A stretch of 64,000 nucleotides of DNA from Diadema antillarum (Eukaryota), in contig NW_027271683.1 of NCBI RefSeq assembly GCF_040938485.1, positions 930,001 through 994,000 on the forward strand, written 5' to 3'. The position numbers and the translations under genes were made by a program. Positions 1,126-54,342 of this stretch are shown one piece after another. Below the pieces are notes generated by a model. The model had not been told where the DNA came from. It made no database searches and saw nothing but the letters and a program-made list of their open reading frames with translations. Each line of letters starts with the position of its first letter. Within the stretch, counting starts at the first letter, position 1.

Positions 1126-2493
1126 GTCGTAAGTACTGCTTTACCTCTCGTACTTGATTGGCATTTATTTTGGCAATGGATCACAAAATGCTCACATGGT
1201 GCCGCATCAACATTATCGCCTAAACACACCAAACAGACTAAGACGTTGGAAGAGACATGATCCTTACCTGGAAACTCAAAATATGTTTGATATCAATGTT
1301 GGTTCAAATGCACGGCAAGAAAGGCGACTGAGGTTGAAACAAAGAAAGGTAAAAGACAATTGCTTCAAGTCCATGCATGTGAGCTTCAGCATACATTATG
1401 GTGTCCAATATTTGTAGGCATTCTCCTCCTTCACTGACGCGTAAAATCGTTTTGCTTTCACCGAGCATTAAATGTTGGACAGCAACGAAAAAGGATTCTC
1501 ATTAATTCATCAAGGTGATTCCAACAACATAAGAAAGAGCAACTGTGGCACTGCAGGTCAGCTTATTATTTTGTATGACAAACAGGTTTTTTTTTTCCCT
1601 AGAAGTTGTCAGAAATTTGGCACAATGTCGACTGTAGACATCTGTCAGATATTCAATGTCACCAGCGGGCAGAATCGGACTCTAGGAGACGAAGTATTTT
1701 TTGCCATTACGTACATTCAACTTGGTGTCTCGAACCTACTGAACCTGTTCTTGATGATCGCTCTGCAGACTCCTCTGGCTAATTTTGACGAGATATCCCA
1801 TCGTTTCTTTCGAGTGTTTGCTGTCCTGAATTGGTTGTATAGTGCCTATTGCATCATCGCCCGTATTTGCGTAACAATTTTAGAAAAACCGACCATCCTG
1901 AATAGGATGATTTTCGTAGATATTGGATTTATATCCGCAACTCAAGGTTTTGCATTGCTAATCAATCTAAAGCCCCAGTCACATAATGCTCTGCGTCCGG
2001 CGTTACGTCCAAAAAAGTCATTTTTTCCACGGACCCCCGCGGATCCTTTGCCGTCACCAGAAATTTTTACAAAACATGCGGGCAAAAAATGCGGGCGATA
2101 AGGACAGATACGACCAGATGCGAATACTTGCGTCCACTTGCGGATATTCTTACGAATTGGCACATAATAGTTCTGAACACTTGGGGAGAGTTGCGCATTT
2201 TTCGGATAGTTACGGATAGTTACAGATTGCTATGAATAACTATGGACAATTTGGTTTTCTCTTACGATCCCTGCTAAGTCAGTGTATTATGACAGCAAGG
2301 TTATCACATTTTGGACTGTCTTACATTGTACACTGGGGAAAACTGAAATTGAGTTACGTACAACTTGTGAAAAAAATCGTAATCCTTTAATTCACTTTAC
2401 AATAATAAAAGATATATGAAATTTTGAACTTGAACTTTGAATTTTGTTTGTGCAACTCAAATATGAATAAACGTCATAATGTAAAGAATGTAT

Positions 2494-2972
2494 GTGACCG
2501 TGCATCACAAAACGAACAAAAAGTCGCACACACTGATTTTATGTGAGGACTGAAAATAGGCGAAATGGGTCAACCGAGCCGATCTTGACTTGGCTACCCT
2601 GGGTAAATAAGGCTTTATCATTATTATTATTATTATTATTATTATTAATTTCAGTTTAATCTGATAATCCCCTCATTGTTGTTACTCCGGTGGTTTCCAT
2701 CCTGTTTTTTTTTTTGTCCCATTCATTGCACAACCAGCACGGCTTGATAAAGATTAAGCGCTTGAACAAACACTCTACTTCAGAGCCTCTTTTCTCAGTT
2801 TACACTTTTTCCGAGTGTGTGCATTCTTTCCAATATTTAGATAGGTTAGGAGAGTCCATTTGATTTGAGTAATACATCATTTTAAAGCTTAAAGTCTGCT
2901 CTTTCAGAACACGCTCCCAACTAAAATTGTTATGTGTGGCGACTTTTTGTGTGTTTCATGGTGCAGGGTCAC
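2494..2972. mobile_element. MITE family A, copy 1 (GTGACC...GGTCAC termini), internally deleted
   Basis: About 33-bp imperfect TIR GTGACCGTGCATCACAAAACGAACAAAAAGTCGC / GCGACTTTTTGTGTGTTTCATGGTGCAGGGTCAC. Body is homologous to 12976-13661 (inverted) and 23891-24562. Flanks GTAT/ATTT are not a clean TSD. Confidence 0.85.
2591..2646 (+). mobile_element. Extreme 3' tail of a non-LTR retrotransposon with an (ATT)n tail
   Basis: TGGCTACCCTGGGTAAATAAGGCTTTATC(ATT)n sits where the other two MITE-A copies have about 265 bp of body sequence. It resembles CR1/L2-type 3' ends (poly-A-like signal followed by a simple-repeat tail). Confidence 0.55.
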
Positions 2973-52880: not shown

Positions 52881-53241
52881 GCATCATACTGCCTACTTGA
52901 TTGATATTTCACAGCAGACAACGGTGTCTTGTCAGTTTCGCATCTTAGCATCGTCTTTGCATCAAGAACATGTACCTTCAGGAAAATCTTACAATGAAGG
53001 CAGGATAGCAAATCCACTATCAGATAAAGACAGTTCCTCGCACGAGTTTTACTTGATACACAGCGTGGTTTCCAACGTCGCGTCGAAGCATCCAAATATA
53101 GACCCATACTTATTCTATCTTCGCCGAGCACATCACTAAAACATCCCATTATAAGAGACTGTGTCATTGGTTACTAGTCAAGACTACACGAGCGGGTTGC
53201 TTTCCCCAAAAGTTGATCCCGTTATATAAGCAGTGCACAAA

Positions 53242-54342
53242 ATGACGACGGCAGATTTCTGTGAGGTGATTAATAACACCATTGCGTTTTATCAATCTAG
53301 TGCAGACAATGCATTTTCTATCATTAATTACATTCAACTTGGTGTCTCGAACGTATTGAACATGTTTCTGTTGATTGCTCTGCAGACTCCTCTGGCTAAC
53401 TTTGACGAGATATCTCATCGGTTCTTTCGAGTGCTTGCTGGAGTAAATTGGCTGTACAGTACGTATTGTTTTATCGTTCGTATTTTGGCAATGACTTTAC
53501 ACAAACCCTTCATTCTGTTCCAAATGATTTTCGTGGACATTTCGTTCATAATATCAACTCAAAGCCTAACATTGCTAATTAACCTAAATCGGTACATCAT
53601 GATAACTCGACCTCTGCGATACTCTACTCTGATAAACACTTGCCGAGCCAACACTGCCATTGTAGGAATTTTCTTGTTCTCACTGTTGTCTCTTTCCTTT
53701 GCTCCTTTTCCGAATTCACCTTTCGAAAAAACAATTTACGCATTCATTGAGTGCGATTTGAATACTCTTGGTATTTTTTTCGAAATCTTGGAGGTTATTC
53801 TTTTGATCGTACTGGTAGCATGTGCAGCAACAATTATATTCATAACCGGCACAAATTTGCACATCTTCTTAATTGCACGGCGTCTCCATAGGCAGGTGGT
53901 CAACCAGCCGCCGGCGGTCCTGGACCCGTTAGGGGTCACAGACACCCACATTATCGACCATCAATACCCACACACCCAGATGGTAAAGAAAATCTCCAAA
54001 AGGCTAGGTCGTCTGCGCTCGAAGTCAACAAAAGGCAAACAGCGGCCAGCTCGTACATTGACGAAGTCGGTGAAGGCAACGATCACGGTGGCTCTCATCA
54101 CAGGTTCGCTCTACCTGTACTGGGTCCCACAGGTTGTGAACATAACATGGTTTCTGCGGGTCAGGCTTCCGCTTCCTAAGTGGTGGACGTCCTTGGTGGA
54201 AAGTTTACCGTTCTTCAGCTTGTGGTGGAATGTTGTCGTCCTCATACTGACGGACAAACATCTTAAGAGGACAATCAGTAATCTAATCCGACGCATCGAT
54301 CTCAAGCAATGCTGGAGTCCACACTTTGGTGTCTATGTTTGA
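53242..54342 (+). CDS. GPCR8: intact intronless class A 7TM receptor, 366 aa
   Basis: Open ORF from ATG 53242 (MTTADFC) with a shorter ICL3; all family motifs are present. Confidence 0.92.
   Translation: MTTADFCEVINNTIAFYQSSADNAFSIINYIQLGVSNVLNMFLLIALQTPLANFDEISHRFFRVLAGVNWLYSTYCFIVRILAMTLHKPFILFQMIFVDISFIISTQSLTLLINLNRYIMITRPLRYSTLINTCRANTAIVGIFLFSLLSLSFAPFPNSPFEKTIYAFIECDLNTLGIFFEILEVILLIVLVACAATIIFITGTNLHIFLIARRLHRQVVNQPPAVLDPLGVTDTHIIDHQYPHTQMVKKISKRLGRLRSKSTKGKQRPARTLTKSVKATITVALITGSLYLYWVPQVVNITWFLRVRLPLPKWWTSLVESLPFFSLWWNVVVLILTDKHLKRTISNLIRRIDLKQCWSPHFGVYV

Follow-up and report, generated by a model that had tools for sequence, protein, structure and literature searches.

A tandem array of divergent rhodopsin-class orphan receptor genes in the sea urchin Diadema antillarum, candidate chemosensory-type receptors with a conserved Asp3.32

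Sea urchins possess hundreds of lineage-specific orphan G-protein-coupled receptors (GPCRs), and no publication that identifies a ligand for one of these receptors was found. A cluster of such genes in Diadema antillarum raises the question of what kind of receptors they encode and what an aspartate shared by all copies at transmembrane position 3.32 may say about their ligands. The cluster lies in a window of 64,000 nucleotides (assembly GCF_040938485.1, contig NW_027271683.1, positions 930,001 to 994,000 of the forward strand; coordinates below are those of the window), and an earlier note on this DNA had taken it for a lineage-specific, TAAR-like family of amine or basic-ligand sensors. Here, we weigh this proposal against others. 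With a probability of roughly 0.65, the genes would form a lineage-specific subfamily of rhodopsin-class orphan GPCRs, arranged in tandem and encoding chemosensory-type receptors. A cationic amine would be one possible ligand class, which the data do not establish.

A six-frame list of open reading frames (ORFs) and a tblastn search with the protein of the fourth copy (G4) against the window yield eight homologous coding regions and no more, all of them on the + strand and spread from 1625 to 54342, here numbered G1 to G8 (Table 1). All are class A (7tm_1) GPCR paralogs with one coding exon each on the same strand, separated from their neighbors by 5-9 kb and contained within 53 kb. The earlier count of eight GPCRs stands for the number of paralogs, but only five of these are intact genes (G2, G4, G5, G7, and G8, with ORFs of 366-372 codons), while G1, G3, and G6 are pseudogenes. 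In G1, the break falls after the Leu codon and before the Asn codon of a Leu-Asn-Arg-Tyr stretch, G3 is frameshifted by the loss of 2 nt near 15950-15953 at the cytoplasmic end of transmembrane helix (TM) 5, and G6 contains an additional in-frame TAA codon at 36131-36133 within TM6. The picture of a clustered array of single-coding-exon genes that is rich in pseudogenes (3/8) is thereby borne out. Nucleotide similarity among the copies amounts to 68-78% and ends within ~40 bp of the coding sequence (CDS) except in G4 and G5, which alone share ~700-780 bp of upstream similarity (20551-21260 vs. 29045-29824) and are also the closest pair (0.47 synonymous substitutions per site, dS). The shared upstream sequence places the two with the most recent duplications of the array. 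Outside the coding sequence, all that is conserved across the copies is a pyrimidine-rich tract with CAG or AAG after it, ~30 nt 5' of the ATG (for example 21215-21260 and 9030-9075; the AG is absent in G5 and G6). The tract resembles a 3' splice acceptor, and the genes therefore probably have an upstream non-coding exon.

Both domain searches and structure prediction place the encoded proteins in class A. Pfam 7tm_1 (PF00001) matches all five intact copies with 36.9-47.9 bits against a cut-off of 30.5 (E 1e-9 to 1e-12), and the AlphaFold2 model of G4, for which the paralogs and 29 distant matches served as input alignment, has seven long helices, a mean predicted local distance difference test score (pLDDT) of 80.5 and a predicted template modeling score (pTM) of 0.77. 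The top Foldseek matches in the PDB and among Swiss-Prot models are the adenosine A1 and A2A, beta-1 and alpha-1A adrenergic, melanocortin, and cannabinoid receptors and TAAR6, at 14-18% identity, with TAAR6 as one among many equal fold matches. VIA-align Z scores against class A structures range from 24.5 to 26.7 and are nearly flat over adenosine, opioid, ghrelin, neurotensin, muscarinic, and adrenergic receptors. Since Z is ~25 across them all, the predicted fold identifies a class A GPCR only and does not separate subfamilies. Compared with PDB sequences, the family profile finds A2A first (E 4e-11), followed by the beta-1 adrenergic receptor (3e-7) and GPR21 (9e-7), while GPR21 is the best single-sequence match for G4, a weak one with a partial alignment (E 1.7e-6). 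The adenosine receptors A1 and A2A head both the profile matches and the structural ones (VIA Z 25-27); however, their identity to the family is just 16-19%, and they have Val at 3.32 where the family has Asp.

The comparison of the copies with each other suggests a repertoire of receptors with a common signaling partner. The ratio of non-synonymous to synonymous substitution rates (dN/dS) is 0.31-0.51 in pairwise comparisons at a dS of 0.46-0.85, which points to clear but relaxed purifying selection, and because the dN/dS of the three pseudogenes is not raised, their disabling is probably recent compared with the age of the duplications. When G4 is set against contigs from at most two other samples of this organism (three runs), at least 8 synonymous and 9 non-synonymous differences appear, and no insertion or deletion in the CDS. 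In the family alignment, the extracellular helix halves have a column entropy of 0.97, compared with 0.50 in the cytoplasmic ones (Mann-Whitney p = 2e-7), and an approximate test gives 1.09 at 29 generic class A pocket positions vs. 0.68 at the other TM positions (p = 0.003). The most conserved segments are the first and second intracellular loops (ICL1, entropy 0.23; ICL2, 0.43). A constant inner face combined with a diversifying pocket would fit the pattern expected of a repertoire in which a common transducer is activated by different ligands.

Relatives of the family are few and distant. A word-indexed search of 5.8 billion proteins gave no match for G4 alone, and a profile of the family plus its relatives retrieved three distant sea-urchin proteins only. 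An exhaustive HMMER search of 1.84 billion representative proteins returned 38 matches, the best with E 3e-11 at 25% identity and none below E 1e-30, in agreement with the claim that the family is lineage-specific. Among the 20 of these 38 matches that were checked for names, the named ones are mostly from sea urchins (S. purpuratus, Lytechinus pictus, L. variegatus, and Diadema), the others being one protein of a sea cucumber and two of the annelid Owenia. The names they received automatically do not agree, examples being "GPR52-like", "GPR21", "beta-1 adrenergic receptor-like", and "TAAR8c-like". Expanded rhodopsin-type GPCRs of echinoderms have been described as ApORs in starfish (PMC5442662) and as "surreal-GPCRs" in sea urchins, the latter as cited in two further papers (PMC7042368; PMC10855541). 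The array shares with these a rhodopsin-type sequence, rapid lineage-specific duplication into tandem clusters, here of eight same-strand copies, an uninterrupted coding exon, and nearest relatives among echinoderm orphan receptors. It differs from the surreal-GPCRs in the lack of a close counterpart among the available proteins of S. purpuratus, Lytechinus, and Diadema (at most ~25-31% identity), and the combination of D3.32 and R2.61 with the motifs NRY and NVxxL is specific to the family in the window. The array is one further case of rapidly expanded echinoderm GPCR lineages ("surreal-GPCRs"/OR-like), within whose known tandem, echinoderm-specific rhodopsin-type expansions the family would form a new, very divergent subfamily.

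The assignment of the conserved aspartate to position 3.32 is secure. In 8/8 copies, the Asp is residue 99 and the Arg of the NRY motif residue 117, exactly the spacing of 18 residues on which the earlier note had built its case (encoded by GAT in G1 and by GAC in G2 to G8). A phmmer alignment to the beta-3 adrenergic receptor puts D99 on D3.32 with no gap through the (D/N)RY motif; alignments to the beta-1 adrenergic receptor pair query residues 98-149 with 52 chain residues and are hence ungapped; and hhalign places Asp on Asp when the family profile is compared with the aminergic-type protein P0037 (W..D...DRY). Moreover, D99 and R117 lie in a single continuous predicted helix (residues 89-122, block pLDDT 87-95), and the segment NRY.M.T.PL.Y fits the pattern DRY....PL.Y at the end of TM3 and the beginning of ICL2. 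The note's assignment to 3.32 is therefore sound. Since 18 residues correspond to five helical turns, D99 would lie on the same helix face as R3.50 and point into the bundle. A register of TM3 based on A2A (HMMER, with 2-3 gaps and a matched "TQS" triplet) was rejected, as it would break the continuous helix; the beta-adrenergic and hhalign alignments, ungapped from Asp to Arg, contradict it as well. The invariance of D99 alone is weak evidence and statistically unremarkable, because 95 of the 360 ungapped columns (26%) are invariant among paralogs that are 60-71% identical. D99 is a buried acidic residue that was fixed in the ancestor of the family and has been retained over pairwise dS values of 0.46-0.85.

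The origin of this residue was addressed with a maximum-likelihood tree (LG+C20 PMSF, 40 rows, with vertebrate reference receptors left out). The eight copies form a clade with 100/100 support on a stem of 1.5 changes per column, and the family is nested in a 95/94-supported set of sea-urchin orphan clades. Its sister group (93/93) consists of P0001 and P0006, with Thr at 3.32, His at 7.43, and TPxxY in TM7. P0006 is the S. purpuratus model LOC105442104 (XP_011672223.1) and P0001 an unnamed ENA fragment that is near-identical to it over the overlap. The P0006 gene model appears chimeric, with ~165 unrelated N-terminal residues joined to a GPCR part from TM4 to the C-terminus, and its missing N-terminal half matches P0001; the two look like pieces of one gene or of close orthologs. 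The neighboring NRY "GPR21/52-like" group has T or I at 3.32 and keeps C3.25, the NLY group has F or Q at 3.32, and a Diadema "TAAR8c-like" group has H. The clades nearest to the family, formed by "GPR21/GPR52-like" sea-urchin proteins (P0002, P0003, P0052, and P0067) and the LOC105442104-type gene, have in common with it NRY and a subsequent IM..PLRY; in the sister group, an N-terminal Cys with a glycosylation site and a motif in the second extracellular loop (ECL2) are common to both as well. They differ from the family by T or I at 3.32, in P0002 and P0003 by the retained C3.25, and in P0006 by the retained TPxxY and the His at 7.43, and their identity to the family is 20-31%. P0037, which is the sole aminergic-type match and carries D3.32, falls on the opposite side of the tree, and an Asp 18 residues before the DRY-type Arg occurs in 1 of ~28 scorable nearest representatives. 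Because the Asp is consistently absent from every neighboring clade, the most parsimonious explanation is a gain of Asp3.32 on the family stem, convergent with amine receptors and not inherited from them. Deep nodes in such trees are fragile, and the proposed gain is founded mainly on the residues in the neighboring clades. The suggestion that the family is "possibly convergent" thus agrees with nearest relatives that carry T, I, F, Q, or H instead of Asp3.32, while a TAAR-like descent is contradicted by its place among sea-urchin orphan clades, apart from P0037.

The surroundings of D99 are partly fixed and partly variable. The pocket positions that never change are R80 (2.61), D99 (3.32), and W299 (6.48) and, by approximate numbering, A4.60 and I5.39. 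R80, on which the earlier note is silent, is assigned to 2.61 by ungapped numbering from N2.50, with codons that vary synonymously between CGT and CGA, and hhalign places it on the Arg at 2.61 of P0037. In the sister-group fragment P0001, an Arg lies at or next to the same position (2.60 by ungapped count from 2.50) together with Thr at 3.32. At 7.43, six positions N-terminal to the Asn of the LN(V) motif, six of the eight copies have Tyr, G2 has His, and G8 has Phe; at 6.51, G2 has H, G4 has E, and the remaining six have Q, followed by I, M, L, or V at 6.52; and 7.40 is S or T in all copies and Trp in none. On these three residues, Y7.43, Q/H/E at 6.51, and the missing W7.40, the eight-copy alignment confirms what had been reported. 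Three intact paralogs carry a second pocket acid at differing positions (E6.51 in G4, E at ~5.43 in G7, and E7.39 in G8). At 3.25, the family has Leu or Gln, so that the disulfide between C3.25 and ECL2 is without its Cys in TM3. An N-terminal Cys and a Cys in ECL2 are both present in 7/8 copies, and G7 alone has neither (Phe at 44369-44371 and Arg at 44861-44863). As G7 lacks both together, the pattern is consistent with a disulfide between N-terminus and ECL2 that would substitute for the missing bond.

With aminergic receptors and TAARs, the family has Asp3.32, Trp6.48, and in 6/8 copies Tyr7.43 in common, and with TAAR genes the clustered arrangement and the single coding exon. It differs from them by the absence of W7.40, of aromatic residues at 6.51/6.52, of the C3.25-ECL2 disulfide, and of DRY and NPxxY, in place of which it has NRY and N-V-x-x-L, and it falls outside their clade in the tree. 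The hallmarks of aminergic receptors include Trp7.40 and the aromatic pair at 6.51/6.52, and TAARs are recognized by the TM7 fingerprint NSxxNPxx[Y/H]xxx[Y/F]xWF. The TM7 of the family reads SSLWLNVIILILTDK, and its nearest relatives are echinoderm orphans. The family lacks several defining features of aminergic receptors and TAARs, and "TAAR-like" would describe a possible functional analogy only.

Taken together, the preferred explanation is that the locus encodes exteroceptive or chemosensory-type receptors. The eight paralogs stem from old duplications, followed by the recent disabling of three. The strongly conserved cytoplasmic half would serve a common transducer, while the diversifying extracellular half and the generic ligand-pocket positions would give each paralog a different ligand. 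A fixed polar core of the pocket, consisting of Asp3.32, Arg2.61, Trp6.48, and usually Tyr7.43, may anchor a feature common to polar or charged ligands, with specificity tuned by the variable positions 3.28, 3.29, 3.36, 3.37, 5.43, 5.46, 6.51, 6.52, 6.55, 7.39, and 7.42. Asp3.32 would have been acquired on the family stem, independently of amine receptors.

What the Asp does in such a pocket can be read in at least two ways. If the receptors were amine or cation chemoreceptors that have converged on TAARs, Asp3.32, hydrogen-bonded to Tyr7.43, would be the counter-ion for a protonated amine, and the paralogs with a second acid might take diamines or polyamines. The alignment of D99 to the aminergic D3.32, the invariance of D3.32 and W6.48, and the Tyr at 7.43 in 6/8 copies speak for this, and the second pocket acids of G4, G7, and G8 recall the two-acid diamine sites that are known in some TAARs. 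However, D3.32 is also found in opioid, somatostatin, and MCH receptors, W7.40 is absent, positions 6.51/6.52 are Q/H/E and aliphatic instead of aromatic, and the lack of the C3.25 disulfide, DRY, and NPxxY leaves D3.32 and Y7.43 as support. In the tree, the family does not descend from amine receptors, and the charge of the Asp may be neutralized by the invariant neighboring R2.61. On balance, the amine reading is less likely than not. Alternatively, Asp99 may be no free amine counter-ion but may be kept mainly as the partner of Arg2.61, either in a structural salt bridge between TM2 and TM3 or in a site that binds zwitterions such as amino acids at two points. Here, the invariance of R80 despite its synonymous codon changes and its alignment to the Arg at the same TM2 position of the D3.32-bearing P0037 are in favor, and there is precedent: a D2.61-K3.32 interhelical salt bridge has been proposed to shape the binding surface of the GnRH receptor (PMC5662886), and a K3.32-E7.39 bridge is described for CXCR1 (PMC10425996). 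The GnRH receptor has charges at the same two pocket positions, but in the sea-urchin family they are reversed (R2.61, D3.32), the two families are unrelated, and the contact is a putative one. The proximity of R80 and D99 is predicted from their position numbers, and P0001 combines Arg at 2.60/2.61 with Thr at 3.32, which argues against a strict coupling. Taken by itself, a charge pair is just as doubtful as amine binding, and the conserved Asp has at least two readings of similar likelihood, amine sensing among them.

Two other proposals abandon environmental sensing or signaling altogether. The receptors could respond to endogenous signals, or they could be self-activated orphans in the manner of GPR21 and GPR52, in which an extracellular loop fills the pocket. 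GPR21 as best single-sequence PDB match (E 1.7e-6), the automatic annotation of relatives as GPR21/GPR52-like, and an ECL2 that is predicted to be helical in the G4 model agree with this; however, the similarity to GPR21/52 is weak, the profile search favors A2A and the beta-1 adrenergic receptor, and 3/8 pseudogenes, a dN/dS of 0.3-0.5, a variable pocket, and the lack of orthologs in other urchin proteomes would be atypical of endogenous-ligand receptors, so that we consider it improbable. It is more improbable still that the array is a decaying or non-signaling remnant whose Asp has no current role in ligand binding. Three of eight copies are disabled and the Y5.58, Y7.53, and P7.50 switches are lost, as such a remnant would predict, but five long ORFs have stayed intact after dS ~0.5-0.85, dN/dS lies well under 1, conservation of the cytoplasmic face is very high (see the entropies of ICL1 and ICL2 above), and similarity between copies survives in coding sequence only. 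On the other side, a bolder form of the preferred explanation, in which class A chemoreceptors with an independently evolved Asp3.32/Arg2.61 site detect charged small molecules in seawater (amines, polyamines, or zwitterionic amino acids) and are activated in a non-canonical way, is rather unlikely as a whole. If true, it would mean that these receptors signal non-canonically despite the replacement of D2.50, D3.49, P5.50, Y5.58, P7.50, and Y7.53.

Several points weigh against a repertoire of functional chemosensory-type receptors as proposed here. Most activation microswitches are replaced throughout the family, with N2.50, N3.49, no P5.50, Asn at ~5.58, V7.50, and L7.53 (residues 69, 116, 205, 336, and 339 are the microswitch residues in G4 numbering), and because of this, ordinary G-protein coupling is not assured and signaling may be unusual. 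The replacements themselves are under selection, since the positions are kept through synonymous codon changes. The test for pocket variability is approximate in that it takes generic positions, eight related sequences, and numbering from anchors, and the numbering of TM5 is approximate due to the absent P5.50. That the side chain of D99 would face the pocket is deduced indirectly, from helix geometry. Finally, the three sequencing runs that contain the sequence cover genes and spacers at equal depth in short contigs; they look like genomic DNA and are uninformative on transcription.

The spacers and one of the pseudogenes contain several repeats. The insertion in G1 is bounded by a perfect 12-nt terminal inverted repeat (GCCCCAGTCACA / TGTGACTGGGGC, by direct string comparison) and flanked by a TAA(A) target duplication, and because of these two features a non-autonomous DNA transposon is suggested. 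A ~330-bp internal piece of it recurs twice in the window, at 12972-13302 (- strand) and 24249-24563, with 80-87% identity. In the sequencing runs, word depths of 10^4-10^5 mark the stretch 23728-24515 as a very high-copy repeat. Between G3 and G4 lies a tandem repeat (17052-18405; unit 379 bp, 3.6 copies, 79% matches). Direct repeats of ~1 kb at 24633-25611 and 27592-28606 are 93.5% identical and enclose ~2 kb of comparatively GC-rich, C-skewed sequence; the pair looks like the long terminal repeats (LTRs) of a small or truncated LTR element. A non-LTR retrotransposon is located between G6 and G7 (38065-40900), with its coding region split over several ORFs, of which 38469-39539 contains an endonuclease/exonuclease/phosphatase domain (Pfam E 1.8e-11) and 40001-40900 a reverse transcriptase domain (E 2.5e-26).

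Table 1. Receptor copies of the array and the insertion in G1, with coordinates in the window.
Feature	Coordinates	Strand	Description
G1 5' part	1625..1971	+	pseudogene; N-terminus to TM3, last residues ..LINL
G1 codons	D3.32 GAT at 1919-1921; R2.61 at 1862-1864	+	
Transposon-like insertion	1972..4269	.	2,298 bp, splits G1 in TM3
G1 3' part	4270..5043	+	from NRY of TM3 through stop codon
G2	9076..10191	+	intact, 371 aa; D3.32 codon 9370-9372; His 7.43; His 6.51
G3	15332..16445	+	pseudogene; D3.32 codon 15626-15628
G4	21261..22376	+	intact, 371 aa; modeled copy; D3.32 codon 21555-21557; Glu 6.51
G5	29825..30931	+	intact, 368 aa from ATG at 29825; D3.32 codon 30119-30121
G6	35210..36355	+	pseudogene; D3.32 codon 35504-35506
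G7	44351..45469	+	intact, 372 aa; D3.32 codon 44645-44647; Glu at ~5.43
G8	53242..54342	+	intact, 366 aa; D3.32 codon 53536-53538; Phe 7.43; Glu 7.39

The array exemplifies a known phenomenon in typical form and comes with a putative idea about ligands. It adds a subfamily that has had no representation in public protein sets, and it may offer a natural instance of class A receptors that are maintained under selection without the usual activation switches. Among the many orphan receptors of sea urchins, the charged pair D3.32 and R2.61 would provide a hypothesis about ligands in echinoderm chemoreception that is concrete and cheap to test.

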